Positions 11,101 through 41,036 of a stretch of DNA of 64,000 nt are shown in pieces. Numbering within the stretch: position 1 is the first letter of the stretch; each line of letters opens with the position of its first letter. The stretch lies in the sequence record KY499642.1; one strand, 5' to 3'. A model generated the notes under the pieces. It had not been told where the DNA came from. It saw only the letters and a list, made by a program, of their open reading frames with translations, and did not search any database. A program made the translations under genes and the position numbers.

Positions 11101-11104
11101 TACG

Positions 11105-13848: not shown

Positions 13849-13863
13849 GTTTAAGGAAATAGC

Positions 13864-14565: not shown

Positions 14566-14574
14566 GACACATAA

Positions 14575-14600
14575 AGAGAGGAGGCGTAAGCCCCCTCTCT
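14575..14600. terminator. Hairpin/terminator between convergent genes
   Basis: AGAGAGGAGGC-GTAA-GCCCCCTCTCT with one mismatch. Confidence 0.65.
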
Positions 14601-14612
14601 GATTTATGCGCT

Positions 14613-23771: not shown

Positions 23772-23802
23772 TCGTAGACCCCTATTCCAAAAAAATTTAA
23801 GT

Positions 23803-23818
23803 ATATTTCATTGTAGTG
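23803..23818 (+). promoter_or_regulatory. Candidate early promoter of chmA
   Basis: ATATTTCAT-TGTA-GTG preceded by an A7 tract. Confidence 0.7.
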
Positions 23819-23888: not shown

Positions 23889-25748
23889 ATGGCATTTAAT
23901 ACTGGCGAAAATAAGACTCAAGACAAAGCGGCTAACACTGGTCGTAAAGACAATGAGAACAAAGGTCGTAAAGACGAAGGTCGTCGTTCTGATGAGCGCG
24001 CTCGTCGCAACCTTGTATCTCGTGCTTGGTCGCCTGGTTTGTCTGAGCAGGGCCGCAGCGCAGAATTCGTTAAGCGCGCGAAAGAGTTCCTTGAAGATCA
24101 AGGTAACAAAAACACAATCATCCTACAGCCTGACAACGAGCTGGCTCGTGAGCTGTCGGATTCATTCGGTTTCGTAATCTACGGTACTCACGTAGACTCT
24201 GACCTGATGTGGCACCTACTGGTATTTGAATCTCAACTTAGCCCTGTTGCTATGGAAGAAATCAAAGACCGTAACCGTCGCTACTCTCGTGACGAGAAAA
24301 TCTTCGACTTCGAAACTACTTCAGATGCAATCAGCGATGATCTGGTTTCTGATATCGAAGAGTGGCTACGTCGCAACGTTGAAGTTGACGGTGAGCTGTA
24401 CTTCACTAACGCAACTGTAGTTCCAGTTGAAGTAGACCTTGAGTCTGATGCGGTAGTTCAGCTACTGGGCTTCGATGCAGAAGATTCAAACATCCTGCTG
24501 TCTGACACTGACGAACCATTCAGCTCTAAGATGCTGGCTGACCGTTCAGTACTGAAAGCGAAGTTGAACTTCACTTCACTTGACGACAAGCGTGACCTTA
24601 CTTCAATGCCACTACGTTCTGACCTGCAAATCAGCATCTCTGAAAATCTGCGTGACAACAAAGTCAGCATGATTCGTTCAGCAGGTGGTCAGCGTACTCT
24701 GGTTGAAATGGATGCGTACGTGAATGCTCGTTGGGTTGGTCATGATGAAGCAGACCGCGATGACGAAATCGATCCAGCATGCTACGTACCAGAAGTAGTA
24801 ATGACTCAAAGCAACCCTTACCACAACGATGTGTACGGCGGTAACTTCGAGCGCTTCTTCCTTGGTCTAGCTGCACTAATGTACACCAAAGATGGTGACG
24901 TGTGGATGAAAGGCTTCGAGTCTTCACTTCACGGTGGTGGTCGCGTATCTAGCCTTGCTTACGGTATGGACCCAGAAGTATTCCCAGACGGTAAAATCCC
25001 ATCTGACATCAGCATCGTAGACGAAGACCCAACTGAAACTGGTAACTGGCTACGTAAAATCTTCTTCCGTTCAGAGCGCGGTCGTTCTATCCCAGTAGAA
25101 TTCGCAGTACTGATTAAAGAAGGTGGTGTTGGCTACGCAACTAACAAGCTTCTGCTTGACGTTGCAGACGACAACCCAGATGCACTGGACAAACTGATCA
25201 ATGTACTGGACAACCTAACTGATGGCGTGTCTCAGGACTACCTTGACATCCGTGACTACACTGATGTTATCTCTGGTCAGGTTCGTGTACCAATGGGTTA
25301 CTTCAAAGATGCTGACGGTGAGCGCGCTGGCGAGTTCATCGATACTCAGTTCGTAATGGAGCGTCTGAAAGACAACTACCCTGAGAAGTTGGATGACTAC
25401 TTCGAGTGTGTTCAGATTGATGATCGTGAATTCGACCACGAAGAAGCGATGACCAAACTACTGGACATCTACCAGCTGGTTACTGATGGTCAATTCAAAC
25501 TGAAAGGCTTCGGTACTAAACTGTACATCAACCCAGACTTCCTAGACGGTCTAGCTAAAGCTATCAAAGCTAAAGACGCTGGCCTGAACATGGAGCTGGA
25601 AGCAAACGTAGAAGTGAACTTCCGTCGCGGTCGTCGTTCACAAGGCCGTCGTGCATCAGCAGGTCTTGTAGACTCACCGCTTGGTCGCAACCGTCGCACC
25701 TACTCAGGTTCGCGTCGTCGCGGTTCACGCACTCGCTACCGTCGTTAA
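23889..25748 (+). CDS. chmA: Chimallin, major phage-nucleus shell protein (phiKZ gp54-like)
   Basis: 619 aa at the invariant position immediately upstream of the nvRNAP beta' N-terminal gene. Own promoter and terminator, high-expression codon bias, disordered N- and C-termini. Assigned by synteny, size and recalled features, not by alignment. Confidence 0.82.
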   Translation: MAFNTGENKTQDKAANTGRKDNENKGRKDEGRRSDERARRNLVSRAWSPGLSEQGRSAEFVKRAKEFLEDQGNKNTIILQPDNELARELSDSFGFVIYGTHVDSDLMWHLLVFESQLSPVAMEEIKDRNRRYSRDEKIFDFETTSDAISDDLVSDIEEWLRRNVEVDGELYFTNATVVPVEVDLESDAVVQLLGFDAEDSNILLSDTDEPFSSKMLADRSVLKAKLNFTSLDDKRDLTSMPLRSDLQISISENLRDNKVSMIRSAGGQRTLVEMDAYVNARWVGHDEADRDDEIDPACYVPEVVMTQSNPYHNDVYGGNFERFFLGLAALMYTKDGDVWMKGFESSLHGGGRVSSLAYGMDPEVFPDGKIPSDISIVDEDPTETGNWLRKIFFRSERGRSIPVEFAVLIKEGGVGYATNKLLLDVADDNPDALDKLINVLDNLTDGVSQDYLDIRDYTDVISGQVRVPMGYFKDADGERAGEFIDTQFVMERLKDNYPEKLDDYFECVQIDDREFDHEEAMTKLLDIYQLVTDGQFKLKGFGTKLYINPDFLDGLAKAIKAKDAGLNMELEANVEVNFRRGRRSQGRRASAGLVDSPLGRNRRTYSGSRRRGSRTRYRR

Positions 25749-25772
25749 TCGACAGTAGTAAAATAAAGAAGA

Positions 25773-25800
25773 TGGGGAGCATTGCTCCCCACTTTTTTTT
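25773..25800 (+). terminator. Intrinsic terminator after chmA
   Basis: TGGGGAGC-ATT-GCTCCCCA followed by C and T8. Confidence 0.9.
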
Positions 25801-25821
25801 AGTGTGTAACCGTCAGACTAA

Positions 25822-27369
25822 TTGGGAGATAAACTTATGACGCTTGGACAACCACGTCCCGATTGGGAATCGAATGGCATCAGTCTTGACATCTATTCAT
25901 TAGAAAAAGATTTTGATGAACTAAAAATCGAACCAATCATCATTAATGACGTAGCTGATGAGTTCAGCGTCGGTCGCACTATCGATGTAATCAATGATCT
26001 GATTCGCGTTAGTTACGACAGTGATGAACTAAACACGGTGCCTTCCTGTGAAAAGGGATGTACTACAGGTGCCTTTAACTACGACCCAGTCCACCCTATC
26101 ACATGTGATGTGTGTGGTACTACGGTCAAATCCGTCATCAACCAACCACTCTTACCACAGGTGTGGATGAGAGTACCAAAGAAAGTGGATGCGTTTATCC
26201 ATCCGCGTATTTACCAACTGTTCTCTGAGTACTTCAGAAACAACTACTTCGATTTAATCGAGTATCTCACTAACCCAACATATGTAGTTCCTCGTCACAA
26301 TAACTACCGAGGCGGCAAACCTGAAATTGAGAAGTTGCTGGACTTCTTAACGGATTGCAAGGTAGAACGTGGCATTAACTACTTCCATCGTAACTTTGAC
26401 GAGTTGATGGACTTGTTGTTAATTCAGAACCCGAAACTGTTCACCTATAAATACGGTACAGCGGATCGTGCTACACGTGTCTGTGCGAAGTTTAAATACT
26501 TCCTCGACTTATATCGTGACAGCATCTTTACTCGCTACCTACCGTTTCCGTCGAAACTCATCATGGTTTCAGAACGTGGTGGTACGGCAGAGTTCATTGA
26601 CCCGAACATGAAAGATGCATTCGATGCTCCTAAGACAATTGCGTCATTGGAAACTCGTGCAACTAAGCCAAGCTACAAAGTAGTGCAAGCTGAAACTGTA
26701 AAGGTCATTAAACTGATGGGTGCCTACTTCAATGGGTACTACAGTAAGACGTGTTCTGGTAAGACAGGTATGTTCCGTGGACAACATGGTGGCTCACGTG
26801 GCTTCTTCACTGGGCGTGCAGTAATTGCACCTCTAGCGATGGAACACGAGTACGATGAAATCCACACGCCGTGGTCATGGTCAGTGACTATCTTCTCCGT
26901 ACACCTTGAGAACAAGCTGCTACGTCTAGGATATAATCCGCGTCAAATCATGCGGAAGATTGATAAGGCTACAGTTCGTTACGACAAGATGATTCATGAA
27001 CTCTTAAATGAGATCATTGCAGAATGTCCAGAAGGTGGCTATCCAGTATCGATGCTGCGTAACCCAACGTTACGTCGTGGTTCGAACCAGTACTTCCGTA
27101 TTACGAAGATTCTGACGAACGTTCATGACAATGCTATCATGATGTCGGTACTCGCAATCAAAGACCCTAACGCGGACTTTGATGGTGACCAATTGCAGGT
27201 TAAACTGTTGGTGGATAATAAAGAGAAGCGTCAGTTCTCGCGTCTAGCATCGCACCTGAACATTATGGATACAGACCATCCAAACCGAATCGGTGGGCAC
27301 ATCACGTTCCACCCTGAAGTAACAACCATGGCAAACAACTACTTGTCACACTACAGAAAGGCAGCATAA
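25822..27369 (+). CDS. Non-virion RNA polymerase beta' N-terminal (catalytic) subunit (phiKZ gp55/56.1-like)
   Basis: NADFDGDQL active-site loop, Zn-binding CEKGC...CDVC, GRAVIAP and RNPTL motifs. Confidence 0.95.
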   Translation: MGDKLMTLGQPRPDWESNGISLDIYSLEKDFDELKIEPIIINDVADEFSVGRTIDVINDLIRVSYDSDELNTVPSCEKGCTTGAFNYDPVHPITCDVCGTTVKSVINQPLLPQVWMRVPKKVDAFIHPRIYQLFSEYFRNNYFDLIEYLTNPTYVVPRHNNYRGGKPEIEKLLDFLTDCKVERGINYFHRNFDELMDLLLIQNPKLFTYKYGTADRATRVCAKFKYFLDLYRDSIFTRYLPFPSKLIMVSERGGTAEFIDPNMKDAFDAPKTIASLETRATKPSYKVVQAETVKVIKLMGAYFNGYYSKTCSGKTGMFRGQHGGSRGFFTGRAVIAPLAMEHEYDEIHTPWSWSVTIFSVHLENKLLRLGYNPRQIMRKIDKATVRYDKMIHELLNEIIAECPEGGYPVSMLRNPTLRRGSNQYFRITKILTNVHDNAIMMSVLAIKDPNADFDGDQLQVKLLVDNKEKRQFSRLASHLNIMDTDHPNRIGGHITFHPEVTTMANNYLSHYRKAA

Positions 27370-27372
27370 CTT

Positions 27373-27990
27373 ATGGCGAACGTAATGCGTGGAGTAGGAA
27401 ACGAAGGTGTTCGTGATATCCTTTACTCTCGACCGAAACGTCTTCTTGAAGATTATCATGAAGAAGTATTTGGCGATGAAGGTATTGCACGAAACTTCTC
27501 CGAACGTTTCCGAGAACGGGCTAAGGCGAAGATCGATCGTCTCAAAAGTAGTCGTGCTATTCGTGCAGCGTCTGCTACATTCCGTAAACTTCGTAACCGT
27601 GGTCGTTTAGACCGCATCGAATGTCTACTAGATGTAGGTGCACTGCAACATGCGCCACCGCGTATGCAATCACTGATTATGGCGAACCCTAATGTTCGTC
27701 GTCGTTGGCAGAAGCGTACTTTGGCTGGCTACGAGAATGGTTATAACTTGCGTGCGGACCAACGCAATTCAATTAAGCATTCACACTCAACATATCGTAT
27801 GATAATGGATGGACTTGTGCAAGAGGATGAGGGTAAACATGTATCACATACTTACGCTCTAACTCAAGCCGAGAAAGACAACCTTTCATACAAAGACAAA
27901 GCGGAAATCCGTCAGACATGGGCACGTGTCGATGAGATGCTCTGGGAGAATCTTGAAGATCCGACCTCAGAGTACAACGCAATGTTGTAA
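27373..27990 (+). CDS. Conserved core hypothetical protein (phiKZ gp59-like position, possible import cofactor)
   Basis: 205 aa, Arg-rich, directly after nvRNAP beta'. Synteny only. Confidence 0.55.
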   Translation: MANVMRGVGNEGVRDILYSRPKRLLEDYHEEVFGDEGIARNFSERFRERAKAKIDRLKSSRAIRAASATFRKLRNRGRLDRIECLLDVGALQHAPPRMQSLIMANPNVRRRWQKRTLAGYENGYNLRADQRNSIKHSHSTYRMIMDGLVQEDEGKHVSHTYALTQAEKDNLSYKDKAEIRQTWARVDEMLWENLEDPTSEYNAML

Positions 27991-27998
27991 ACAAGATG

Positions 27999-28033
27999 AG
28001 AGGTATGGCGTTTGCCGTACCTCTTATTTTTTT
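27999..28033 (+). terminator. Intrinsic terminator
   Basis: AGAGGTATGGC-GTTT-GCCGTACCTCT followed by TA and T7. Confidence 0.8.
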
Positions 28034-28052
28034 GCCTTTTGAGGAACCTTTT

Positions 28053-28469
28053 ATGAATGTTATACCAACATTAAACTCCAAGGGTTATGCTAAAACACCT
28101 GAAGAGAAGCTCGATGCTGTCTTACTGTACTACCAATCATTGAATCCATCAATGACCAACCGTTACCGTGGTAAGATTCGCTCACTACAGAATGCTATCT
28201 GGGAAGCTGGTACAGATAGTGGTAACATGGAACGTCTTACACGTATTGTTAAGGCAGACCTAGTTATGATCCTGACTAACAACTTCCCATCTGGAGCTAC
28301 TGTAGAAGTCACTGCTGAACCTTTATCTACTGATGGTTCAACCTACAATCTAAACATTAGTGCAACCGTAAATGAGAACGGTAAAACCTACGACCTATCT
28401 GGCTCATTGGATAGAATCAATTCTCGTTTCATGGAAACATTCAAAGTGACGAGAGTGAATACGGTATAA
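28053..28469 (+). CDS. Conserved protein, possibly T4 gp25-like baseplate wedge fold
   Basis: Start ATG 28053 with GAGG RBS (the track's 27996 start lies in the terminator). Helix followed by VEVTAE...YNLNISATV strands. Confidence 0.5.
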   Translation: MNVIPTLNSKGYAKTPEEKLDAVLLYYQSLNPSMTNRYRGKIRSLQNAIWEAGTDSGNMERLTRIVKADLVMILTNNFPSGATVEVTAEPLSTDGSTYNLNISATVNENGKTYDLSGSLDRINSRFMETFKVTRVNTV

Positions 28470-28517
28470 AAATATGCCGCGTTTTATGATCTGTATTAAT
28501 AACCAAAGGACAGTAAA

Positions 28518-29129
28518 ATGGAAGATTTGATGGTTCGTGCTGCGGTTGAAGAATCGCGCCAAATGACCGAACAACTCCGTGAACTCGATACAGATATCGA
28601 TATCACATTGGAAGACTTTGAACGTCGTGTTCTGCCACAGCTAGCAAACCGTGGTGAAGCTTTCAATGTTCAAGCATGGATTACAATGACTACGCATCCA
28701 AACGTGGGTATTCGTGTTCTGGATAAGAATGGTGATGTGAAGTACTACGTCCCACCATTCCTAGACAACGGCGAAATGCGTGTAAACAAAGACGTTAACC
28801 TGTCAGCGTTTGCAAGTGATTTGGATAACATCACCGCAGACCGCCCACGTGCCAAGGACTCAGTGCTGTACAATGTACTCCAGTCATTCAGTGCTAACGA
28901 TGAAGACATGGTTGTCTCTTCAGTAGAAGCTATCATGGCGCTGAACAAAATCTACGCCGACTACGACATGCCGCTGATTGAAGTGGATGATGTAATGCGT
29001 CAGGTGTATGTTAAGCTGAAAGGTACTGAACCAGAAGTGCCTGTCAGTAATGGTGAACCAAAAGTAGAAGCAAAGGCTAAACCAGTTGCAGAAGACATCT
29101 TCGAAGACGACGGTTTCGATCTCCCATAA
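28518..29129 (+). CDS. Conserved core hypothetical protein
   Basis: AAGGA RBS, 203 aa, acidic C-terminus. Confidence 0.7.
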   Translation: MEDLMVRAAVEESRQMTEQLRELDTDIDITLEDFERRVLPQLANRGEAFNVQAWITMTTHPNVGIRVLDKNGDVKYYVPPFLDNGEMRVNKDVNLSAFASDLDNITADRPRAKDSVLYNVLQSFSANDEDMVVSSVEAIMALNKIYADYDMPLIEVDDVMRQVYVKLKGTEPEVPVSNGEPKVEAKAKPVAEDIFEDDGFDLP

Positions 29130-30307
29130 TGTTAAATGTCAGACAAATAAAATTTAATGATCTACCTGCCCGACCGAATAGTGTAAAGCGTTATGGCGTA
29201 ATTAGTGATGTTCACCTAGGGCATCCTAGAACGCCGACGTGGCGCATTATTGAGACATTGAACAAGTATGTCACTAACGTGATGTTCATGTCTGACATTG
29301 ATGCCTTGTTTGTGTCGGGCGACTTATTTGACCGTCTACTTAATCTACCTACTACCGAAGTAGAAGATATCAATGAGTGGACAGAACGTCTACTACGACT
29401 ATCTAAAAGTTGTAGAACACCAATCCGAATCCTTGAGGGTACGCCTAGCCATGACTGGAAACAGTCCGCTACTATCTCTCAAATGAACGAGCTGTATCAG
29501 ATTGGTGCCGACATCATGTATGTCGAAGATTTGGCGATCATTGAAGATGAATCGCTAGGGATGACCATTGGGTATGTTCCAGATGAGTACCGTGAAAGTT
29601 GCGAGCAAACCACCATTGAGTTCAAAGAGCTGATGGCTACTCGTGGCTATGATAAGGTCGATATGATCATCATGCACGGTATGTTTGAATATCAAATACC
29701 AAAGGCTGCTGCCAAGTCAGTATCTCACTTTAAAGAATACGAGTGGGAAGAAATGGTGCGCCATGCGATAATCATTGGACATGACCATCGTCATAAAAGC
29801 AAAGGCAAGGTTGTAGTACCGGGTTCATGGGAACGATTGGCACATAACGAAGAAGATGACAAAGGTTGTCTAGTAGTAGATGTGGGTCATGACGTAACTG
29901 ATGTTTACCACCTTACTAATGAAGATGCGATGTGGCATATCACAATTGACGGAGTGAAACTCACAGACGTAGAAGTGATTGCTAAGGCAGAACATCAACT
30001 TCATCAGTTCGCTCGCTTAGAGCGCCCTATGGGGCGTCTCAAGGTGAAATACAACCGTAAGTATGATATCAGTGCAAGACTGTCGGAATGGAAGAAAGCA
30101 TTTACTGAGGTAATCGTGGAAGGGGCTAGCGAATCCGATGAGGAAATCGCGAAGTCTGAAATCGATGATGAATTTAAACTCAGTGGTGAAGCCATCAACA
30201 TCAATGATGAGAATATAGAAGGGATGATAATGCGTGAAGCAGAAGTTCCTCCTGAATTGATGGTGTACTTCCAGAAAGAGATTCAAGTAGTGAGATCAGC
30301 ACTCTAG
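29129..30307 (+). CDS. sbcD: SbcD/Mre11-like metallophosphoesterase nuclease
   Basis: ISDVHLGH, SGDLFD, EGTPSHD, MHG and GHDH motifs. Confidence 0.85.
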   Translation: MLNVRQIKFNDLPARPNSVKRYGVISDVHLGHPRTPTWRIIETLNKYVTNVMFMSDIDALFVSGDLFDRLLNLPTTEVEDINEWTERLLRLSKSCRTPIRILEGTPSHDWKQSATISQMNELYQIGADIMYVEDLAIIEDESLGMTIGYVPDEYRESCEQTTIEFKELMATRGYDKVDMIIMHGMFEYQIPKAAAKSVSHFKEYEWEEMVRHAIIIGHDHRHKSKGKVVVPGSWERLAHNEEDDKGCLVVDVGHDVTDVYHLTNEDAMWHITIDGVKLTDVEVIAKAEHQLHQFARLERPMGRLKVKYNRKYDISARLSEWKKAFTEVIVEGASESDEEIAKSEIDDEFKLSGEAININDENIEGMIMREAEVPPELMVYFQKEIQVVRSAL

Positions 30308-30315
30308 GAGCAACC

Positions 30316-31143
30316 ATGGCACTTGTTGATATCAGCAGTCGCACGTTGGGTTGGTTTGGGGCGTCCATAGGGACGTCTCTTGCTTTCGAACGTATCACGA
30401 ACACAGGTGAATTTGAACAAACGTTTGATAAACCACCCATTCAGGATATGGAAAGTATTTGGATTAACCTACGCACCCTTATCCGTAATGCGCACAATGC
30501 TGTAGAAACTCAAGACCAAATTTATATCACCGGAACGCAGCTGTCAGAGGCTGTAGCGGAAGATTGGGAAGCTATCAATAATGCGGTAGCCGAAGTAAAC
30601 CCGAACTGTGAGCTCCGGTTATATTTATGTACTTACGAAGGGATTAATGCGGAATTTCCAAACGCTAACTTTCGTAATAACAGTACTACGAAACAACTTT
30701 CGTATGAAACCGTCGAACGCGACGTAATAAGTTATTTTCTTGATAATTACAGTGAAGAATTGTTGAAATTCAAATGGCAGCTTTCGGGCAGTAAAGGGTG
30801 TGTCTTAATGACGCACCTTCCCTTAGACTTGGTGTCTTACCCGAAATTTCCGTCTCTGAAACTCCTCGAATCGCACACTGGAGCAATCAAAGAAAGACGC
30901 CATTGGCACACCAAGATGAAGATCAAGAAAGATGGTCCGGTTATCCCGTTCTGTCGTGCTATGTTAGTCATCTTCGGTGATAGCTCAATGTTCTCCCCGC
31001 AGCCTATAAAGGCGCGAAAAACGTTGCTGACTATCAGTGAGAAGAATAAGTGGCATCCACTTACATCCATGGCAAAAATTGAGCAAGATGTGAAGCTTGC
31101 GCATGAGCCATTCTTACTAGATTTCATCAAGCAATACAAGTGA
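30316..31143 (+). CDS. Conserved core protein, possible PIN/5'-nuclease-like fold
   Basis: IWINLRTLIRN and acidic motifs. Lies between sbcD and chmC. Fold is inference. Confidence 0.55.
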   Translation: MALVDISSRTLGWFGASIGTSLAFERITNTGEFEQTFDKPPIQDMESIWINLRTLIRNAHNAVETQDQIYITGTQLSEAVAEDWEAINNAVAEVNPNCELRLYLCTYEGINAEFPNANFRNNSTTKQLSYETVERDVISYFLDNYSEELLKFKWQLSGSKGCVLMTHLPLDLVSYPKFPSLKLLESHTGAIKERRHWHTKMKIKKDGPVIPFCRAMLVIFGDSSMFSPQPIKARKTLLTISEKNKWHPLTSMAKIEQDVKLAHEPFLLDFIKQYK

Positions 31144-31235
31144 GGGTAAGGCGTTGCAGTTAATTTTAACGCGGCGTACTACCTTATGTAGAAACTCTTA
31201 AAATCAATTTCAGAAAGAAAATTAAGGAACAGATA

Positions 31236-31877
31236 ATGTCCCACATCAATGAAAACGTTCTTCAGCTACGTACTCGTGCAAATGGCGGTCGTCCGACTCT
31301 AATGAAAATCAACCCTAACCGTTACAACCGTGTTTCGTTCTCAGCACGTGTAGGTGAAGGTTGGGTGAACGCAGACCTAACAATCGATGCGTGGAAAGAT
31401 TTCTGTAACTACATCCGTATGGCTACACGCCTTAAAGAAGCGGATAGCTTTGCAATCCAGCTTAAGAAGAAAGAGCAGGTTTACGCAGTAGTAGTAGTTG
31501 GCCGTGATGATGACGGTCTGGTTTACGTTGAACTGGCTAACACAGGTGGCAACAAAGTTCGCTTTGACTTCCTGCCTAAGCATCAGTTCATCCACATGCG
31601 CTCTGGTAAACCAATGCCAGAGTCTGAACTGTCTCGTAACCGTGCAATGGCATGGGCTGATCTGGTTGAGCCAATGGTTATTGAACTGTGGAAACGTGAC
31701 TACAAAACCGATGATGCTGGTCCACAAGGCGGCGGTCAACGCGGTAACTACAATGGCGGTGGTAACCGTGGTGGTTATAACAACGGTGGTGGCAACCGTG
31801 GTAACTACGGCGGTGGTAACCAGCCACAAGCACAGCCTCAAGCAATCGATGGCGACTTAGACGATTACCTACCATAA
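31236..31877 (+). CDS. chmC: ChmC, shell-associated RNA/ssDNA-binding protein (phiKZ gp67-like)
   Basis: Beta-rich core plus Gly/Asn/Arg disordered tail (GGGNRGxY-like x3) and acidic tip. Immediately upstream of the sigma-like subunit and picA. Confidence 0.72.
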   Translation: MSHINENVLQLRTRANGGRPTLMKINPNRYNRVSFSARVGEGWVNADLTIDAWKDFCNYIRMATRLKEADSFAIQLKKKEQVYAVVVVGRDDDGLVYVELANTGGNKVRFDFLPKHQFIHMRSGKPMPESELSRNRAMAWADLVEPMVIELWKRDYKTDDAGPQGGGQRGNYNGGGNRGGYNNGGGNRGNYGGGNQPQAQPQAIDGDLDDYLP

Positions 31878-31889
31878 GAGTAGATGAAC

Positions 31890-31915
31890 TAGGTAGGTGC
31901 TACGGCACCTACCTA
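31890..31915 (+). other. 11-bp hairpin with UACG tetraloop after chmC (terminator or 3' stabiliser)
   Basis: TAGGTAGGTGC-TACG-GCACCTACCTA, no U-tract. Confidence 0.65.
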
Positions 31916-31929
31916 AACAAATTTTAAAT

Positions 31930-31945
31930 ATATTTCATATAAGTG
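31930..31945 (+). promoter_or_regulatory. Candidate early promoter motif
   Basis: ATATTTCAT-ATAA-GTG upstream of the sigma-like/picA operon. Confidence 0.7.
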
Positions 31946-31962
31946 GAATTAAGCTTTGGGAG

Positions 31963-33549
31963 ATGTTTGACGTGCACTTAGTATTAAAAAATGAAACTAT
32001 GTGTCTAGTCCACGATGGACAAGAATTAGACTTCGGTCAGTTTAAACCGAAGAAACCAAATAGTGAAGACCCGGCGGTCAAGAAACTCTCAATGACTCAG
32101 TATGTGAAGAAACTTTCAGATGCGATGTTCTGCGAGATAAATGGCTACTGGAAAACACTTCCTAAGGAGGAACTCGACGAGCTATTCGAACTGTATGAAA
32201 TTGCACACGAAGATATCATTGAGTCACCGACTCAGTCAGAACGTTACACCAACGTTCGTGAAGGTATCAACAAAATCGTAGACCGCTACCATCGCTTTGA
32301 AGATATGGCGGACTTCATGAAGGATAAACCAATTATCCCTACTGACAATGTGAAAGAATCATTCGACAGTAGCATTCATGACACAATCTCAAGACAGACA
32401 ACTTACATCATGTCTGAGTATCGTGACTTGGCAATCCTGACAGTCATCCTGCGTTCCGTGGCACCTATCTGGAACTTGACTAGCCGCATGACTACCGTGG
32501 CTAATGAAAAGGCTGGTAAGGTTTACCACGAAATTGAAATGTTCAGCATGTTGGCAAACACTGACCTAATCGACTGTGAAGCATTCCGTCGACTAGAAGA
32601 GTTTGTTAATGCGCAATGGGACAAGTTTGAGACAGGGCGAAATAAGCAGGAAGCTAAGAACTCGATTCTTAGTTCTGTTGTAGCTGGCTTAGGTACATCT
32701 GACATTCCTAACTACTTGTTAGCAACGTCGGTAGTAAACAAGCTGGCAGTGCGTGAAGTTAACACGTTCAGAGATGAAGGTGACTTAATTACTCACGTGT
32801 ATCAGCGTATCGATACAGAGGTGAAGAAGCTGGCGGTGAAGTTCGCTCGGTTGAAGCCAAAGGTCGATAAGCGAATGGGTGAGGATGAAGATAAGACGGG
32901 TTACTTAGAATCATTCCGCACTCGTGAAATGGTACGCCGAGATGTACACATGTTAGTGCAGTACTATCTGTACGACTACCGTGCAGCTAAGCGTGCTTTA
33001 GATGAGGAGATTCCTGCATCGCTTGTTAAGGCGTGTATTGAATCGTTCCAAGAGTACAAGCCCGTACCGATTCGTTCTGACCAGTGCGTAATCGTACAAT
33101 GGGTATTGGGTAAGATTGTTCATCCTCGTGCAATCCCACACATTGATCGTACTGCTATGATTAATGCAATGGGTATTACACAGGCGGCTTTGATTCATTG
33201 GCGTATGCGAGACATCGCAGTGTTGATGAGTTCAAAACCTGCACCATCTGATCCAGACTCTATCCTTATCACAACGCCTTTTGATGCGGTAACTACGGAT
33301 GTGCGTCAGCGCCTTGCTGAAACGTACCCTTACTACCGACATTCAAAGACGACTACATCAAGACGACAGATGTGTCCTGGCCTGCAAGCGTTGGAAGCAT
33401 ACACTAAGATGTTTGCTGACCAAGAATGGGATTTGAATTGCACGAAAAGAATAAGCGAAGACTTACGTCAAGAACCGGGCCGATTCAAACCATCTCGCAG
33501 ACTCAAGAACGAATTAGCAGAACTGCTAATCAAAATCAATCGTCGTTAG
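31963..33549 (+). CDS. nvRNAP sigma-like promoter-specificity subunit (phiKZ gp68-like)
   Basis: ~525-aa helical protein between chmC and picA. Start is ATG 31963 or GTG 31972 (GGGAG RBS). Confidence 0.72.
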   Translation: MFDVHLVLKNETMCLVHDGQELDFGQFKPKKPNSEDPAVKKLSMTQYVKKLSDAMFCEINGYWKTLPKEELDELFELYEIAHEDIIESPTQSERYTNVREGINKIVDRYHRFEDMADFMKDKPIIPTDNVKESFDSSIHDTISRQTTYIMSEYRDLAILTVILRSVAPIWNLTSRMTTVANEKAGKVYHEIEMFSMLANTDLIDCEAFRRLEEFVNAQWDKFETGRNKQEAKNSILSSVVAGLGTSDIPNYLLATSVVNKLAVREVNTFRDEGDLITHVYQRIDTEVKKLAVKFARLKPKVDKRMGEDEDKTGYLESFRTREMVRRDVHMLVQYYLYDYRAAKRALDEEIPASLVKACIESFQEYKPVPIRSDQCVIVQWVLGKIVHPRAIPHIDRTAMINAMGITQAALIHWRMRDIAVLMSSKPAPSDPDSILITTPFDAVTTDVRQRLAETYPYYRHSKTTTSRRQMCPGLQALEAYTKMFADQEWDLNCTKRISEDLRQEPGRFKPSRRLKNELAELLIKINRR

Positions 33550-33591
33550 AGCTAATAAACAAACCACTTTTATTCATAAGGAAACACATAC

Positions 33592-35160
33592 ATGAACTTT
33601 ATCAGTCTTAAGCTTATCGAAGTTGGCGGTCTAGAGAAACAATCTCGCCGAGTATTTGAGTGGCAACGCTCAGGTAACTTCGTTAACGATATTGTTGATG
33701 TGGTTGAGCGTACTGGCGGACGTCTAAGCGTAGACAGCTTCGTTGGTATTGCATCTGATGCATTGACCATCTCAACAGACGTTGAGGAGGTTTATGTACC
33801 GGGCATTGGTAGCGGACGTGATTGGGAAGAGCGCCGTTTCCGTTTCTTCTTAGAGATGGAGCTAGAACCAATGACTCGCTATAATAAGAAGCGTACTCGC
33901 GCTCTTATTCAGGGCTACACCGACCACTCAGACTTGTCACATAACGACAAGGTCGACCCTAAGATGAAGATGTACATCAACAACGTAACTACTGTTCAGG
34001 ATTTCTCTGACGGTGCTCGTGGTACAGTTACCCGTGTTGTTGACGTATCTCAAACGCTACTGGGCGACATGTCCCGTGGTGAAGATTTCCTACTCCGTCC
34101 ATCGGATGTATTTGCACGTATCGAGAATAAAGAAGACTCGATTGCAGATGACTTGGAACTGGATGTAATGGTTGATACTCGTAGTTCGTTCCACTCGGGT
34201 ACTCAGCTAAACGATCGTCGTAGTAATGCATCAAGCAACTACCTGCACAAGTTGGTAACATCAGACTTGGATGCAGCTGCGAATATCGAAACGCGTGACA
34301 TGGGTATTATCCAAGATAACCGTGACACATTAGCGTATGAAACTGCTGGCGGTAATATCCAGACTGTACGTTCGAACAAGTTCCTACGTGCATTGGCTGA
34401 CAAGAACCGTAACTTCAAGTTCTCTAACTACTTCACTTACGCGGACTTAGCGGAGTTCGCAGGTAGTATCAAATCGCTTGACCGTGATACTGACATCATT
34501 CTACCAGATGGTTTTGGTGAGTTTGAATCAGAGCACTGGGATGGTGCAACAGCTGAAGTTAAAGCAGCGGCTCAGGTATGTCACCTGATCCCGATTATCA
34601 TGATTGACTGTTTCATGGATTCAGTCTCGTTCACAATCAGTAACAACGATTGTCGCGGCGATCAATCTGACATGGTAATCGAAGACATGACATCTATGCT
34701 AGGTGAGAACGTCCGTTCTCGTGACCATATCCGTGCATTCGAGACTCGCGTTAAACGTGAAGTGTTCTCTCAAATCACGAACAATGGCCACATGTGTGTT
34801 GACATGGATGTTGACTCAGAGATGTGTGGTATCACAATCATTGAAATCTCAATTGATGGTGACCCGTATGACCGTTACGTATTCCCATCATTCGCAGATG
34901 GTCTGCTATCTCCAGTTGTTACCAACGATGGTGAGAACGCAGAAGACATGGCAGATGGTTACATCGAAGTGCGTAAGCATGTAGATGAAGTAATTGGTCG
35001 TCACCAAGACATCTCACTAAGTACAGATGTACGTTCAGCCGTACGCGACCGTGACCGTCGCTCTCCTCGCTCTGAGCGTCGTCGTAGTAATGATGCACTA
35101 CTAGATGACGATATTCTAGGCGGTGGCAATTTTAAACTTTCTAATTTGGATGATCTATAA
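33592..35160 (+). CDS. picA: PicA/Imp1, phage-nucleus protein import factor (phiKZ gp69-like)
   Basis: 522 aa following the sigma-like subunit. RRFRFFLEME, LRPSDVF and YVFPSFADGLLSPV blocks recalled from this family. Synteny. Confidence 0.72.
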   Translation: MNFISLKLIEVGGLEKQSRRVFEWQRSGNFVNDIVDVVERTGGRLSVDSFVGIASDALTISTDVEEVYVPGIGSGRDWEERRFRFFLEMELEPMTRYNKKRTRALIQGYTDHSDLSHNDKVDPKMKMYINNVTTVQDFSDGARGTVTRVVDVSQTLLGDMSRGEDFLLRPSDVFARIENKEDSIADDLELDVMVDTRSSFHSGTQLNDRRSNASSNYLHKLVTSDLDAAANIETRDMGIIQDNRDTLAYETAGGNIQTVRSNKFLRALADKNRNFKFSNYFTYADLAEFAGSIKSLDRDTDIILPDGFGEFESEHWDGATAEVKAAAQVCHLIPIIMIDCFMDSVSFTISNNDCRGDQSDMVIEDMTSMLGENVRSRDHIRAFETRVKREVFSQITNNGHMCVDMDVDSEMCGITIIEISIDGDPYDRYVFPSFADGLLSPVVTNDGENAEDMADGYIEVRKHVDEVIGRHQDISLSTDVRSAVRDRDRRSPRSERRRSNDALLDDDILGGGNFKLSNLDDL

Positions 35161-36380: not shown

Positions 36381-36384
36381 GAAA

Positions 36385-36423
36385 CAAAAAATAAATAGAG
36401 GGCATTGCGCCCTCTTTTTTTAA
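36385..36423. terminator. Bidirectional terminator
   Basis: AGAGGGC-ATTGC-GCCCTCT with flanking A- and T-tracts. Confidence 0.85.
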
Positions 36424-36744
36424 TTATAGTCCTGAGAGCTGAAGAATCTCTTCAACTGTACCCAAGTCAGGAATACTCAGGCTAGTTACATTTTCATTAA
36501 AGTCTTCAGGCGAATCGATGTCAGATAACATGAGAATCAACCAGTGTAGCTTGTCGTTGATTTTCTGCTGAATTAGATAGCCGTAAAGGTTGTAGTAGAA
36601 GGGACGTGCATCGTTACCAACGGTGTGGATACGCGTCTTTGGATGTTCTTTCAGGTACTTGCGATGTGTCTCAAAATGACGTCGGATTGCGGGATTTGTC
36701 CCAATCTCGTGATAGTCATAGGTAGTATGGTCAGTTACACTCAT
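36424..36744 (-). CDS. LysM-like / T4 gp53-like baseplate wedge protein
   Basis: ARPFYYNLYGYL...LHWLILMLSDIDSPEDF resembles the gp53/LysM pattern RPD..AY.LYG....W.IL..N....P. GAGG RBS. Confidence 0.55.
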   Translation of the reverse strand: MSVTDHTTYDYHEIGTNPAIRRHFETHRKYLKEHPKTRIHTVGNDARPFYYNLYGYLIQQKINDKLHWLILMLSDIDSPEDFNENVTSLSIPDLGTVEEILQLSGL

Positions 36745-36768
36745 GATGGCCTCTATTTAATTTAAGAT

Positions 36769-36784
36769 ATATTTCATTGAAAGG
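36769..36784 (+). promoter_or_regulatory. Candidate early promoter motif (variant)
   Basis: ATATTTCAT-TGAA-AGG upstream of nvRNAP beta. Confidence 0.55.
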
Positions 36785-36821
36785 ACTAACACAAGATGTA
36801 CAAGTAATGGGAGTCACCATA

Positions 36822-38966
36822 GTGCTAGACACTAATAAATATCCAGAAACAGAATGCGACATTACCCTCGACAGAACGGGCTGTACTACGAACTTACAAA
36901 TATTCCCACAGGGTTCGTCAGGTGCACGTGTTCAAATGCAGGGTACGCACTACGCTCAGGCTACGCAAATTGCATTTCCACAATTGCGTAATATCTTTGC
37001 AGGTCCAGAGCGTGACTATGCGAACTACATGTTTAATGTGGTTGTGGAGCACAATTGTACGGTAATCCGTGTAGTGAAACGTTATGCAAGACCGGGTGCA
37101 GGGGAACAGCGCGCGCTGGAAACTTTGGTCTTTGTAGAACGACAACAGGAACCGGGTTCACGTCAAGAACGTAAGCCTATTGTTGACTTAATCAGAATTC
37201 CAACCTTTGTACAGAACCATCAGACCTTCGCGGTTGAATTGGAGCTGACTGAGATTGGTAGCAGACTAGGAGCAAAACGATACCTTAAGAAAGGAACAGT
37301 CCTAGCACAGACCAAATCAGTAATTGATGACGAGTACTGTGTTGGATTACATGCAAACACTTTGCTAGTTTCTCATCCGATGGTAATTGAGGATTCGTGT
37401 TTGATTTCACAGTCCTTGGCTGACCGCATGATGTCCTATGGTTACAAAACCTACCGTATGACAATTGGTGAGAAAGACTTCCCGCTACTTCTATATAAGG
37501 ACAAGAAAGGAAATCCTTCATTGTTCCCAGAAGTTGGTGAGAAGGTTCGTGAAGATGGTATCTTGTTCGCCAAGCGTGAATATGATCCATTGCTAGCAGC
37601 TGTGGAAATGTCTGAGGTTGCACTGTCAGAGCCTTGTGGACATTTCGACGATTGTACATTCGTAAACCCTGATGCTGAGGTAATCGACATCAAGGTGCAT
37701 CGTGATGACATTCGTCCGCGTCGACGTGACCCGCAAACAGGTGAGAACCTACCATGTGAGAAGATGTCAACTCCTGTAGGCATGCAGGAAATCTGTGATA
37801 CATTTGCAGATGCATACTCGAACTACCAAGGTCACATTCGTAGCTTGTACAAGTACGTGAAGGAAGATTATCGTCGTAAGGGTTATCGTGACATTGAATA
37901 TACGCCAGATGCAAAACAGGCGATTATGTATTCAATCGCGGACAACCCACGCGAAGTGAATCCAAACCTATCGAAGTACACGAAGCAGTTCGGCCAAATC
38001 AAGAACGATGATTACATGATTGAAATCACCGTCAAGTTCCCAATCCCTCTATCCGTATCTGGTAAGATTACCGATACAATGGGCGGTAAGGGTATCGTTG
38101 GCGAAATCGTTCCTGACCATTTGATGCCAGTGGATGAGTTTGGTAACCGTGTAGACCTGATGATGTCAGAGAACGCGATGTTGCGTCGTACGAACTTCAA
38201 CCGTGGTTTCGAGAACTATGTGAATGCTGCTCGTCGTGATGCCCAGATTCGTATCGTTGAAATGTACGAAGAAGGGAAAGATGAAGAAGCCTTTGATTAT
38301 CTGCTACGCTTTACTGGAGCAGTTAACCCAGAATGGTCATACGCAATCGAAGAAGCTCACCCAGATAAAGTGAGTCGAATTGATTTGCTAGATGCCATGG
38401 CAACTGGTGAAGAGACACTAAGACTGTGGGTACCGTCAGATAACAAATATCCGATGGATCAGATTATCCGCAACGTGAAGAATGATTTCCCTCCACGTAA
38501 GTCGAAGTTGAAAGTTACCATGCCTGATGGAAGCATTGAGTACACCAAGTCTGAATTCAGCATTGGTGAACTGTACATGATTCGTCTGGATAAATGGGGT
38601 GGTGAATTCTCAGCAGTAGCCGCAGGTCGCTTCCAAGCGTTCGGTACAATCGCAAAACAACACAGCTCTGATAAACACCGTCGTCCAGTTCGTGAGAACC
38701 CAATCAAACACATCGGTGAATCAGAAGTGCGTCACCAACAAGCTTACATCGGTGGTGATGTATGTGCAGACGCGCATGACCGTAGTAATAACCCTGCCGT
38801 GGCAGACAATGTAATCATGAGTATATTGTCGGCAGAGGTACCAAGTAACATCGAACACGCAGTAGACCGTAAGAAACATCCTCTCGGTCACAACCGCGTA
38901 ATGGAGATTAACCGTCACGTAATGCGCTGTGATGGTATTGGCTTTACTACTCGTCGTTTGCAGTAA
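36822..38966 (+). CDS. Non-virion RNA polymerase beta C-terminal subunit (phiKZ gp71-73-like)
   Basis: IEDSCLIS, SGKITDTMGGKGIV, VDLMMS, GELYMIRLDK and IGESEVR motifs. Probable start GTG 36822 after GGGAG (track start 36777). Confidence 0.92.
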   Translation: MLDTNKYPETECDITLDRTGCTTNLQIFPQGSSGARVQMQGTHYAQATQIAFPQLRNIFAGPERDYANYMFNVVVEHNCTVIRVVKRYARPGAGEQRALETLVFVERQQEPGSRQERKPIVDLIRIPTFVQNHQTFAVELELTEIGSRLGAKRYLKKGTVLAQTKSVIDDEYCVGLHANTLLVSHPMVIEDSCLISQSLADRMMSYGYKTYRMTIGEKDFPLLLYKDKKGNPSLFPEVGEKVREDGILFAKREYDPLLAAVEMSEVALSEPCGHFDDCTFVNPDAEVIDIKVHRDDIRPRRRDPQTGENLPCEKMSTPVGMQEICDTFADAYSNYQGHIRSLYKYVKEDYRRKGYRDIEYTPDAKQAIMYSIADNPREVNPNLSKYTKQFGQIKNDDYMIEITVKFPIPLSVSGKITDTMGGKGIVGEIVPDHLMPVDEFGNRVDLMMSENAMLRRTNFNRGFENYVNAARRDAQIRIVEMYEEGKDEEAFDYLLRFTGAVNPEWSYAIEEAHPDKVSRIDLLDAMATGEETLRLWVPSDNKYPMDQIIRNVKNDFPPRKSKLKVTMPDGSIEYTKSEFSIGELYMIRLDKWGGEFSAVAAGRFQAFGTIAKQHSSDKHRRPVRENPIKHIGESEVRHQQAYIGGDVCADAHDRSNNPAVADNVIMSILSAEVPSNIEHAVDRKKHPLGHNRVMEINRHVMRCDGIGFTTRRLQ

Positions 38967-38985
38967 TCTATTAAGGAGATAATAA

Positions 38986-40992
38986 ATGTACGAACTTAAC
39001 GCTCGTAAAATGCTAGACTGGTCAGAAAATGAGGTGTGGGAGCTAGACCCTACTCAAAGCTGTAACCTAACCTTTGATGACAAGACCGTTGCAAATACGG
39101 ACGTGGTTGACGTACAAATCAGCTGGTACTTCTGGCAGGTATCTCGCTTCTATAGCGAAGTACCTGTCACCAGCAACCTGTTCCTACATGGCAGACCGTT
39201 TACGGACGGTCTTGCTCGCACGTTAATGAACGACGCTATTCAATCGACACGTCAGTTTCCTGACATTGACCGTGAAGATGTATGGCGTATTGTCTACAGC
39301 AATGTTTACAACCGTTGTTTCTGTGCATTAGCAACACGACTACTTCCGCATATCTCTGGTACCAACGGTGACGATACCGTAGAGCTGCTAGATGATGAAG
39401 AGATTCGTGAAGCAAATGAGCAGGTGAATGATTCGTTGGCTACAGTAGACCATGTCTACGATGTAATCGAAAAGGTATTTAAAGGAACTAAGTACCCACA
39501 TAACCCTATCGTTCGCGCGACCGGATACGGAACTGTTAAACTAAAACAGATGTTCCCATCCTTTGGCCCACGTGGTCGTGTAACCGATATTGACTCGGAG
39601 ATTTATCGCCGTCCTGTTAAGCGTGGCTTTGCAATGGGCTTTACGTCAATTGCTGACTTCGCTAAAGAATCTCGTTCCGCTGCTAAAGCACTGCTCTTCA
39701 ACAAAGATCCAGTTGCTACAGCAGAATACTTCAACCGTAAGCTACAGTTCGTTGCAGCTTATATTAAGGAGTTAGTGAAAGGAGATTGTGGTACTAAGGA
39801 CTACCACACGCTTGAAGTTCCTGAGGGTGATGCGGGGCGTGAGTTGCTGTACAGTTTAGATGGATTGACTCGTGTTTATCCGGATAACCGTAAAGAGCAG
39901 CATCCAATCGACCCTAAAGATGAAAGTCAGTTGGGTAAGACTATCCATTTCCGTACCACTATCACGTGTAAGCACTTGGCTAAACAAGGTGTTTGTGAGA
40001 AATGTTATGGTGATCTGTCGTACTCAATTCCAGCTGGTGACAACCCTGGTCACGTAAGCTGTACTTCGGTCAACGAGAAGATTACTCAGTTAATCATCTC
40101 AACGAAGCACTTAGACTTCATCATCCACAACTTGTTGGTACGTTTGAATCGTGACGAGCAGGCATACTTGGATACCAAGGACCGCCATCCTGACATGATT
40201 TACATGAACGCCACACGTAAGGGTGAGAACATGGTGATGCGTGTTCTTAAGTCAGAAGCTCCTCGACTAATCAGCGTACGCTATGTAGATGACACGTTCA
40301 TGATGAACCCATCACGTACTACCCAATTGACTCACATGGAATTTCACCATGTTGATGAGAATGGCATGTACCATGGCGAAGTTGAGTTTGATATGGTTAA
40401 ACGTTCTACGAAGGCTTCAATGTCACGTGAGCTGTTAGCCTACATCAAGAAAGTTGGGTGGTCTGAAGACGACAGTTATTACACAATCGATATGTCTAAG
40501 TGGGATGTGAAGAAACCAATGTTCATCTACCCACACAAGCATGAGAACATGTCTGAATATGGTAAGCGTGTAGAACGCTTCATTCGTTCCTCTCGCGAAG
40601 CAGGTGAGAAGAAAGAAACCAAGAAAGGCTACATCAACATGCTAACGAAGTACAAAGATGTTGACAGTGCACTCTACGATGCCTTCTATCTAATCTCTGA
40701 TAAGATTGATGGTGTTTACATGGGTCACATTGCTACGATTCTTGCAGCGTCTCGTGCGCAGCAAGCAGACCAGCAGAACTTCAACCTGCCGTATGGTAAA
40801 GACATGGGTACTTTCCAGACTCATGACGATATCATCAAATACCGTTCACTCGGTGTGGCAATGTTGTTCGAACGTCACAGAAACTACTTCGCTGACATCG
40901 ATAGTTTCATCATTAAAGACCGAATGCCAAGTATCCTCGACGATATGATTCATCTCGAAGAGGACAAGTACCCACGTACTAGTTTGGAATAG
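38986..40992 (+). CDS. Non-virion RNA polymerase beta' middle/C-terminal subunit (phiKZ gp74-like)
   Basis: FGPRG, ESRSAAKAL (bridge helix), GDCGT, Zn site CKH...VCEKCYG, trigger-loop TQLIISTKH. Confidence 0.92.
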   Translation: MYELNARKMLDWSENEVWELDPTQSCNLTFDDKTVANTDVVDVQISWYFWQVSRFYSEVPVTSNLFLHGRPFTDGLARTLMNDAIQSTRQFPDIDREDVWRIVYSNVYNRCFCALATRLLPHISGTNGDDTVELLDDEEIREANEQVNDSLATVDHVYDVIEKVFKGTKYPHNPIVRATGYGTVKLKQMFPSFGPRGRVTDIDSEIYRRPVKRGFAMGFTSIADFAKESRSAAKALLFNKDPVATAEYFNRKLQFVAAYIKELVKGDCGTKDYHTLEVPEGDAGRELLYSLDGLTRVYPDNRKEQHPIDPKDESQLGKTIHFRTTITCKHLAKQGVCEKCYGDLSYSIPAGDNPGHVSCTSVNEKITQLIISTKHLDFIIHNLLVRLNRDEQAYLDTKDRHPDMIYMNATRKGENMVMRVLKSEAPRLISVRYVDDTFMMNPSRTTQLTHMEFHHVDENGMYHGEVEFDMVKRSTKASMSRELLAYIKKVGWSEDDSYYTIDMSKWDVKKPMFIYPHKHENMSEYGKRVERFIRSSREAGEKKETKKGYINMLTKYKDVDSALYDAFYLISDKIDGVYMGHIATILAASRAQQADQQNFNLPYGKDMGTFQTHDDIIKYRSLGVAMLFERHRNYFADIDSFIIKDRMPSILDDMIHLEEDKYPRTSLE

Positions 40993-40998
40993 GTCATA

Positions 40999-41036
40999 GA
41001 TGGGAAGGAGTAACCTTCCCATCGCTTTCTTTTTTG
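40999..41036 (+). terminator. Intrinsic terminator
   Basis: GATGGGAAGG-AGTAA-CCTTCCCATC followed by GCTTTCTTTTTT. Confidence 0.8.

Follow-up and report, generated by a model that had tools for sequence, protein, structure and literature searches.

Very probable chimallivirus core block with shell, import and non-virion RNA polymerase homologues in Vibrio phage pVa-21

The DNA analysed here (the window) corresponds to the final 64 kb of the GenBank record of Vibrio phage pVa-21 (KY499642.1, 231,998 bp), window positions being record positions minus 167,998. The region 23889–40992 of the window was identical to pVa-21 over all 17,104 bases (100 % identity) and very probably represents the conserved chimallivirus core block of this phage, with homologues of nuclear shell, import and non-virion RNA polymerase (nvRNAP) proteins. 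It encodes the chimallin ChmA together with Imp3, ChmC/Imp6 and PicA/Imp1 homologues, three proteins reported as the core of the nuclear import machinery. It also encodes a gp70-like homologue of a shell-associated protein, an SbcD-like nuclease, four further conserved proteins and four nvRNAP subunits (Table 1). A preliminary description of the sequence had read this region as a complete phage-nucleus module interleaved with an nvRNAP, and every open reading frame (ORF) that it listed was found on the plus strand with the same bounds.

In the GenBank annotation of pVa-21, 10 of the 14 block genes are labelled ‘hypothetical protein’. A Pfam scan of the block gave almost no matches, and Rfam and tRNA scans of the window found nothing. 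The block is flanked by a DNA polymerase gene upstream and a helicase gene downstream, the same flanks as in PhiPA3.

Table 1. Genes and predicted transcription signals of the pVa-21 block, in window coordinates
Feature	Position	Strand	Basis or remarks
Promoter-like motif, 71 nt before chmA ATG	23802..23818	+	Pattern search
chmA, distant chimallin, predicted major nuclear-shell protein, 619 aa	23889..25748	+	GenBank pVa21_208 ‘hypothetical protein’; PHROG, phmmer, AlphaFold2/Foldseek
Intrinsic-terminator-like hairpin and run of eight T after chmA	25773..25799	+	8 bp, 6 G-C; RNA fold -19.9 kcal/mol, z -4.8
nvRNAP beta' N-terminal subunit (phiKZ gp55/PhiPA3 gp54 homologue)	25837..27369	+	GenBank start; maximal ORF from 25822
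Imp3 homologue (phiKZ gp59/PhiPA3 gp55), 205 aa	27373..27990	+	phrog_3254, blastp
17-bp hairpin and T-run after Imp3-like gene	27993..28040	+	RNA fold -26.4 kcal/mol, z -7.4
Conserved small protein (PhiPA3 gp56/phiKZ gp62 family)	28053..28469	+	phrog_3294: 1.5e-35 here, 4.6e-20 for PhiPA3 gp56
Weak homologue of PhiPA3 gp58/phiKZ gp64, acidic-aromatic C-terminus	28518..29129	+	phrog_5171, blastp, position
SbcD-like nuclease subunit (PhiPA3 gp59/phiKZ gp65)	29129..30307	+	phrog_100, blastp
Conserved 275-aa protein (PhiPA3 gp60/phiKZ gp66 family)	30316..31143	+	phrog_3229 1.2e-98; blastp to PhiPA3 gp60 9e-44
chmC/imp6, putative Whirly/PUR-like RNA-binding protein, 213 aa, N/G/R-rich disordered tail and acidic end	31236..31877	+	PHROG, hhalign, AlphaFold2
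11-bp hairpin after chmC, without adjacent T-run	31890..31915	+	RNA fold -21 kcal/mol, z -6.6
Promoter-like motif, second block copy, upstream of gp68-like gene	31929..31945	+	Pattern search
nvRNAP fifth-type subunit (phiKZ gp68/PhiPA3 gp62 homologue), ‘sigma-like’ in the preliminary description	31972..33549	+	PHIKZ068, PHROG
picA/imp1, putative shell-associated protein-import factor, 522 aa, R/D/S-rich C-terminal tail	33592..35160	+	tblastn, blastp, PHROG
gp70-like protein (PhiPA3 gp64 homologue), 406 aa	35160..36380	+	phrog_3520, blastp
Bidirectional terminator-like hairpin between convergent gp70-like gene and minus-strand gene	36397..36415	.	z -3.9
Small gene, 106 aa	36424..36744	-	phrog_3455 2.1e-30; annotated in pVa-21 and pVp-JHP1101
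Promoter-like motif, third block copy, upstream of nvRNAP beta gene	36768..36784	+	Pattern search
nvRNAP beta-type subunit (phiKZ gp71-73 homologue), uninterrupted ORF	36807..38966	+	PHIKZ071, PHROG, Pfam
nvRNAP beta' C-terminal subunit (phiKZ gp74 homologue)	38986..40992	+	PHIKZ074 (7ogp_D) 1.3e-67; phrog_3015 1.3e-218
Terminator-like hairpin and T-run closing the block	40999..41033	+	z -4.0

Gene identities in the block

On sequence and modelled-fold evidence, the 619-aa protein is a genuine but distant chimallin. It matched the PHROG ‘nuclear shell protein’ family phrog_4795 at 6.6e-26 over residues 108–572 and, in a phmmer search of the PDB, the Goslar chimallin 7sqt at 1.9e-4. Scanning 1.84 billion cluster representatives with HMMER returned 70 relatives, 22 of them scoring at or below 1e-30; one of these is an 854-aa protein and the other 21 are full-length matches of 29–91 % identity, while the remaining relatives are of classical chimallin length (1e-26 to 7e-4). 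A profile built from 64 of the relatives matched every solved chimallin in the PDB, at 1e-92 to 1e-109.

The AlphaFold2 model of this protein had a predicted local distance difference test (pLDDT) score of 82.6 and a predicted template modelling (TM) score of 0.81, with low-confidence or disordered segments at residues 1–51 and 577–619. The nine best Foldseek matches in the PDB were all chimallins, from Goslar, 201phi2-1 and PhiPA3 (E 3.4e-26 to 1.2e-20), with TM scores of 0.74–0.80 over 550–590 columns at 14–18 % identity; the tenth match was at E 0.14. The structure search of 23889–25748 proposed in the preliminary description thus led to chimallins rather than to an unrelated fold. The gene lies directly upstream of that for the nvRNAP beta' N-terminal subunit, as expected of chimallin genes. 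The high expression ascribed to it in the preliminary description is not readable from the sequence, and would be expected by analogy with PhiPA3 proteomics (PMC11077065).

The 213-aa protein was assigned to ChmC/Imp6, which is gp61 in PhiPA3 and gp67 in phiKZ. Its match to phrog_3284 (3.3e-56) is shared with PhiPA3 gp61, which is ChmC (6.1e-81), and an hhalign comparison of a profile of 80 of its relatives with PhiPA3 gp61 gave a probability of 100 % and E 1.9e-39 over the full length. Single-sequence PDB searches with the 275-aa, 213-aa and 522-aa proteins found nothing significant, and tblastn matches of the 213-aa protein among phages were confined to the two Vibrio phages of this lineage. 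Because direct searches with this protein find nothing outside the lineage, the link to ChmC needed the PHROG match and the profile comparison.

In the AlphaFold2 model of ChmC (pLDDT 82.4, with residues 165–198 disordered at pLDDT <50), two tandem repeats were predicted, the first with three strands and a helix and the second with four strands and a helix (beta-beta-beta(-beta)-alpha); this order of elements fits the architecture published for ChmC (PMC11077065). Fold matches in BFVD were to jumbo-phage proteins from Eowyn, Miami and EL. The Gly/Asn/Arg-rich tail sits on this protein (31236–31877) and not on the preceding 275-aa protein, and its C-terminal part, an N/G-rich disordered region and then a short acidic end, agrees with the published description (PMC11077065).

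The 522-aa protein was identified as PicA/Imp1, PicA being phiKZ gp69 and PhiPA3 gp63 (10.1101/2024.03.21.585822) and Imp1 being phiKZ gp69 (10.1101/2024.03.27.586873). A tblastn match to PhiPA3 gp63 (1e-17) covered 85 % of the query. The corresponding blastp match was at 9e-30 with 24 % identity, and phrog_3141 was matched at 1.9e-128 here and at 4.2e-170 by PhiPA3 gp63. The gene is placed between those for the gp68-like nvRNAP subunit and the gp70-like protein. Shell puncta of PicA/Imp1 and a role in selective import are known only from phiKZ, PhiPA3 and Goslar (10.1101/2024.03.21.585822; 10.1101/2024.03.27.586873), and Imp1 physically binds Imp6 (10.1101/2024.03.27.586873).

A second PicA/Imp1 paralogue was found outside the window: pVa21_075, 439 aa, at record positions 57719–59038 (phrog_3141, 3e-69). 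It stops where the charged tail of the 522-aa copy begins and is thus tail-less, and its presence agrees with a remark in the PicA preprint (10.1101/2024.03.21.585822). Small early-type genes surround it. The 522-aa and 406-aa proteins were also considered as the ‘two PicA homologues’ of the literature, and this pairing was rejected, there being no similarity between them.

The Imp3 homologue is the 205-aa protein. It matches phrog_3254 (6e-59, against 3.5e-71 for PhiPA3 gp55) and PhiPA3 gp55 itself (blastp 4e-18), the record of which carries the note ‘similar to gp059 phiKZ’; Imp3 is phiKZ gp59 (10.1101/2024.03.27.586873). The 406-aa gp70-like protein matches phrog_3520 at 1.8e-104 (PhiPA3 gp64 1.8e-133; blastp 6e-28) and ends in an Arg/Asp repeat tail of about 100 residues. 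PhiPA3 gp64 has been reported as associated with the nuclear shell (PMC11077065).

The four nvRNAP subunits of the block were assigned by comparison with the phiKZ enzyme. The beta' N-terminal subunit matched PHIKZ055 (7ogp_A) at 2.5e-70, phrog_2987 at 8e-165 and PhiPA3 gp54 at 2.7e-80 (blastp), and its catalytic Asp triad motif (NADFDGD) lies at nucleotides 27169–27189, residues 450–456 of the 25822–27369 translation. The gp68-like subunit matched PHIKZ068 (7ogp_B) at 4.4e-21 and phrog_3209 at 5.6e-141, and the beta-type subunit PHIKZ071 (7ogp_C) at 2.2e-71, phrog_3295 at 6.8e-230 and Pfam RNA_pol_Rpb2_6 at 2e-5. The remaining subunit, the PHIKZ123 homologue (5.9e-39), is pVa21_013 at record positions 13349–15028, outside the window. 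Thus all five subunits of phiKZ nvRNAP (7ogp: gp55, gp68, gp71-73, gp74 and gp123) have pVa-21 homologues, four of them in the block as in phiKZ; the difference is one of sequence divergence, with E 6e-39 to 2e-71 and gp68 at 4e-21. A copy of the promoter-like motif described below lies just downstream of pVa21_013, at record position 15052.

The identities proposed in the preliminary description for ChmA, ChmC, PicA/Imp1, the gp70-like protein and the nvRNAP were borne out by sequence, profile or fold evidence, and the NADFDGD motif, SbcD, the Gly/Asn/Arg and RD tails and two further RNA polymerase subunits were all present where it had placed them. Its word ‘complete’ does not stand: the PHIKZ123-type subunit and the second PicA lie outside the window, neither ChmB nor PhuZ was found in the searches described below, and the Imp3 homologue had gone unnamed.

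Among the other block genes, the gp64-like protein matched phrog_5171 at 7e-4 (against 8e-61 for PhiPA3 gp58) and PhiPA3 gp58 at 0.005 by blastp, with its position conserved. The SbcD-like protein matched phrog_100 at 1.1e-52 and PhiPA3 gp59 at 1e-45 (blastp); its Pfam Metallophos match was weak (0.0018) and below the cut-off. For the minus-strand gene at 36424–36744 there was no PhiPA3 match in the block and no annotated PhiPA3 counterpart at that position.

Lineage and comparison with known chimalliviruses

A conserved chimallivirus block has been described for PhiPA3 (PMC11077065). The genes of PhiPA3 gp53–gp68 and phiKZ gp54–gp75 were found in the same order in pVa-21, and each pVa-21 block protein shares a PHROG with its PhiPA3 positional counterpart, in line with the gene order recognized in the preliminary description. 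The two blocks differ in several respects. Only a local blastp match (3e-5) links the two ChmA proteins, the PicA proteins share the low identity given above, PhiPA3 gp57 (phiKZ gp63) has no pVa-21 counterpart, and pVa-21 has the extra small minus-strand gene. The nvRNAP beta gene is a single uninterrupted ORF in pVa-21 and is annotated as an interrupted feature in PhiPA3. The tails of ChmA, PicA and the gp70-like protein are Arg- or Arg/Asp-rich in pVa-21, whereas those of PhiPA3 are Q/M/P/G-rich and uncharged; ChmC has the same layout in both phages, with a folded domain, an N/G-rich disordered region and an acidic end.

The core fold predicted for pVa-21 ChmA is shared with the solved chimallins (Goslar 7sqt-7sqv; 201phi2-1 7sqq-7sqs and 8igg; PhiPA3 PhuN 8fne), and in both the core is flanked by disordered N- and C-terminal extensions. 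The pVa-21 protein differs from them in its low identity (14–18 %), in its Arg-rich C-terminal tail and in being missed by the Pfam chimallin model PF25677 (Chimallin_Phikzvirus). The wording ‘divergent version’ in the preliminary description was therefore apt.

Two close relatives of pVa-21 have been described. pVp-JHP1101 (PQ451753.1), which infects V. parahaemolyticus, is 87.7 % identical over the block, with no change in gene order; its record labels the counterpart of the 619-aa gene ‘putative nuclear shell protein’. pVa-22 is reported to be 99.35 % identical to pVa-21 and to carry putative nucleus proteins (2025 pVa-22 paper). Among 50,697 phage records, a ChmA of the pVa-21 type was found only in pVa-21 and pVp-JHP1101, the next best being 20–26 % identical, and at least 21 distinct metagenomic clusters carry this type. 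On metagenomic contigs with ChmA 45 % and 29 % identical, the gene sizes followed the same order, beginning with the DNA polymerase and continuing to the point where both loci stop, at the start of the gp70-sized gene.

The ChmA tails of this subclade are distinctive in composition. The last 45 residues (window 25610–25745 in pVa-21) contain 20–38 % Arg in all 21 subclade representatives, and their mean basic content is 32 % in the subclade (n=21) as against 11 % in classical chimallins (n=41). The last four positions include an aromatic residue in 14 of the 21 subclade representatives and in 31 of the 41 classical chimallins. The PicA tails on the metagenomic contigs are also R/D/S-rich, and ChmC and the gp64-like protein have short acidic-aromatic C-terminal stretches in 4 of the 4 loci compared. 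These tail differences are compositional observations. A precomputed Pfam table of the sequence collection assigns PF25677 to three subclade relatives (45, 34 and 29 % identity); with hmmscan and a local Pfam copy, one of the three gave no such match at E<=1.

Acidic ends with an aromatic residue or Leu near the C-terminus were seen in ChmC (31851–31877), the gp64-like protein (29106–29129) and PicA (35140–35160), and in several distant phages. Judging from these sequences, the shared C-termini may constitute a common docking peptide.

Transcription signals and gene starts

An AT-rich promoter-like motif occurs six times in the window against 0.58 expected, always on the plus strand (positions 5528, 8876, 15535, 23802, 31929 and 36768). 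Genome-wide, the exact motif core was found at 17 sites, all on the plus strand and all upstream of ORFs, those outside the window being at record positions 6008–160511. The motif is preceded at about 15–20 nt by an A-rich stretch and followed at 4 nt by a G-rich start-like triplet. Early promoters of the virion RNA polymerase in phiKZ-related phages are extended AT-rich elements of high conservation, and the start lies a few bases downstream of them (PMC5312081); the pVa-21 motif resembles them in style. By this analogy, the motif probably marks the early promoters of pVa-21, those used by the virion RNA polymerase.

The preliminary description had given chmA its own promoter and terminator. 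The terminator was confirmed as a strong hairpin with eight T right after the gene, the two together spanning 25773–25791. The promoter held only in part: a sigma-70 scan gave 28 sites against 36 expected, with none upstream of chmA and hence no support for a host-type promoter, while the phage-specific AT-rich motif does precede the ATG, by 71 nt.

Stable hairpins (z -3.9 to -7.4) were found after chmA, the Imp3-like gene, chmC, the gp70-like gene and the beta' C-terminal gene; the one after the Imp3-like gene lies beyond 27990 and ahead of 28053, where GenBank starts the next gene. Since at least three promoter-like motifs and these five hairpins cut the block, it consists of several units and not one operon. 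The signals suggest at least four to five units: chmA alone; beta' N and the Imp3-like gene; the gp62-like gene to chmC; the gp68-like gene, picA and the gp70-like gene; and beta with beta' C.

The signals and homology also bear on gene starts. The maximal ORF from 31897 (550 aa, gp68-like) runs over a hairpin and a promoter-like motif, and because this motif falls inside its 5' end, translation probably begins at 31972 or 31999, for a protein of about 516–525 aa. For the 729-aa nvRNAP beta ORF (maximal start 36777, GenBank coding sequence (CDS) from 36936), the start is probably 36807 or 36822. The GenBank SbcD CDS starts at 29288; the alignment with PhiPA3 gp59 sets in at residue 21 of the longer ORF, which is also the form chosen in the pVp-JHP1101 annotation. 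Compared with homology and the pVp-JHP1101 annotation, GenBank starts are later by 53 codons for SbcD, about 40–50 for nvRNAP beta and 73 for the helicase (41055–42647), so the GenBank starts of two block CDSs, SbcD and nvRNAP beta, are probably too late.

Nucleus formation and alternative readings

What this analysis determined are the gene identities, their conserved order and the signals resembling promoters and terminators; the cellular behaviour proposed here would follow by homology with phiKZ, PhiPA3, 201phi2-1 and Goslar. The block would be transcribed early, probably by injected virion RNA polymerase from the AT-rich sites. Through flexible tails at its N- and C-termini, ChmA would self-assemble into a closed protein lattice that surrounds the phage DNA as it replicates and keeps host nucleases out. 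At this shell, PicA/Imp1, ChmC/Imp6 and Imp3 would license the import of selected proteins, including the co-encoded nvRNAP subunits, and the nvRNAP would transcribe middle and late genes within the compartment. ChmC would bind phage mRNA and may help its export to cytoplasmic ribosomes (by analogy, PMC11077065).

The gene content thus suggests that pVa-21 may form a nucleus, as the preliminary description had supposed. The 2019 description of pVa-21 presented it as a distant phiKZ-like phage and made no mention of a nucleus; the phage was later placed in the chimallivirus genome and PicA trees (10.1101/2024.03.21.585822). According to the 2025 pVa-22 paper, the lineage of pVa-21 and pVa-22 carries putative nucleus proteins and probably builds such a compartment. 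The system, and the place of pVa-21 in it, are therefore already in the literature, and the descriptive addition made here is small: the deep chimallin subclade, the Arg-rich ChmA tails and the phage-specific promoter-like motif are new.

Several points weigh against assigning the block to a nucleus-forming phage. PF25677 gave no match to pVa-21 ChmA at E<=1, although it matches PhiPA3 ChmA at 7.4e-282, this model being built on Phikzvirus-type sequences. The AlphaFold2 alignment for ChmA, run without templates, took in classical chimallins, which leaves the model partly dependent on them. For the ChmC model, the top fold match in the PDB, to repeats I–II of human PURA, was weak (E 0.03, TM 0.44). 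The timing of the AT-rich motif and the polymerase that would use it are proposed by analogy. With PhiPA3 queries against the whole pVa-21 genome, neither ChmB (gp2; best phmmer E 1.5) nor PhuZ (gp28; best phmmer E 0.38) gave a tblastn match at E<=1, these being single-sequence searches of limited reach for which ChmB may be too divergent. Finally, the published descriptions of pVa-21 and pVa-22 contain no imaging or structural observation of a compartment. The PhuZ result is no argument against a nucleus, since the PhuZ-less chimalliviruses Ariel and Asesino form one and PhuZ is dispensable for membership (PMC12908238).

These points raise the question of whether true homologues could be used differently, with the chimallin homologue building an open scaffold, or else a replication factory that is partial or transient, in place of a sealed, selectively permeable nucleus, and with the charged tails providing a condensate-like organization rather than a lattice that has dedicated portals. 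The divergence of ChmA, its escape from PF25677, the undetected ChmB and PhuZ and the lack of reported imaging for the lineage would all fit such a use, as would the very different, Arg-rich composition of the tails, which make the lattice contacts in classical chimallins. The two-domain core fold is nevertheless kept, the C-terminal aromatic residue occurs in most members of both groups, and the block still has, in order, homologues of PicA, ChmC and Imp3, for all of which shell-related roles have been reported; we consider this use improbable.

It is less probable still, to a degree that makes it hardly credible, that there is no functional ‘module’ and that the interleaved genes are inherited synteny kept by descent and shared early timing, with adjacency not needed: the division of the block by its signals, the presence of SbcD and four proteins of unknown role, the location of the PHIKZ123-type subunit and second PicA elsewhere, and a review that counts 68 core genes, grouped into 7 blocks with conserved order (PMC12908238), speak for it, but the order is conserved down to 29 % ChmA identity, Imp1 binds Imp6 so that co-expression may matter, and such synteny is compatible with a nucleus-building core block, qualifying only the word ‘module’.

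Within the chimallivirus reading, a more specific and rather unlikely proposal is that the pVa-21 lineage is a deep, mostly uncultured nucleus-forming branch in which uncharged tails were exchanged for charged ones (ChmA Arg-rich, PicA R/D/S-rich, the gp70-like protein Arg/Asp-rich, ChmC and the gp64-like protein acidic-aromatic), with a tail-less PicA paralogue and no detectable ChmB or PhuZ. If the tails give electrostatic tail–tail or tail–RNA contacts at the shell, this would be a different physical way of attaching import and export factors to the lattice.

The value of these results for the field is modest. A first-pass reading of raw sequence can recognize a chimallivirus core block, and a gene-by-gene annotation is now supplied for pVa-21. 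The lineage, with two cultured phages among the 50,697 records and at least 21 metagenomic ChmA clusters, offers a natural test of essential as against variable features, the candidate essentials being the core fold, gene order, ChmC architecture and C-terminal aromatic residue, and the candidate variables tail charge, PhuZ and PicA copy number.

Elsewhere in the window, about 1.5 kb at 10664–12184 is without annotated CDS or any ORF >124 aa, and neither a tRNA nor an Rfam family was found in it; all that was seen there were short T/C-rich direct repeats spaced about 45 nt apart, at 11124–11249. The window also holds two separate DNA-polymerase-type genes. One, at 20556–22727, encodes a divergent family-B-like polymerase (phrog_2927) and adjoins an SH3-fold gene just upstream of the block, and the other is a minus-strand CDS at 49110–50870 whose annotation reads ‘putative B family DNA polymerase’.

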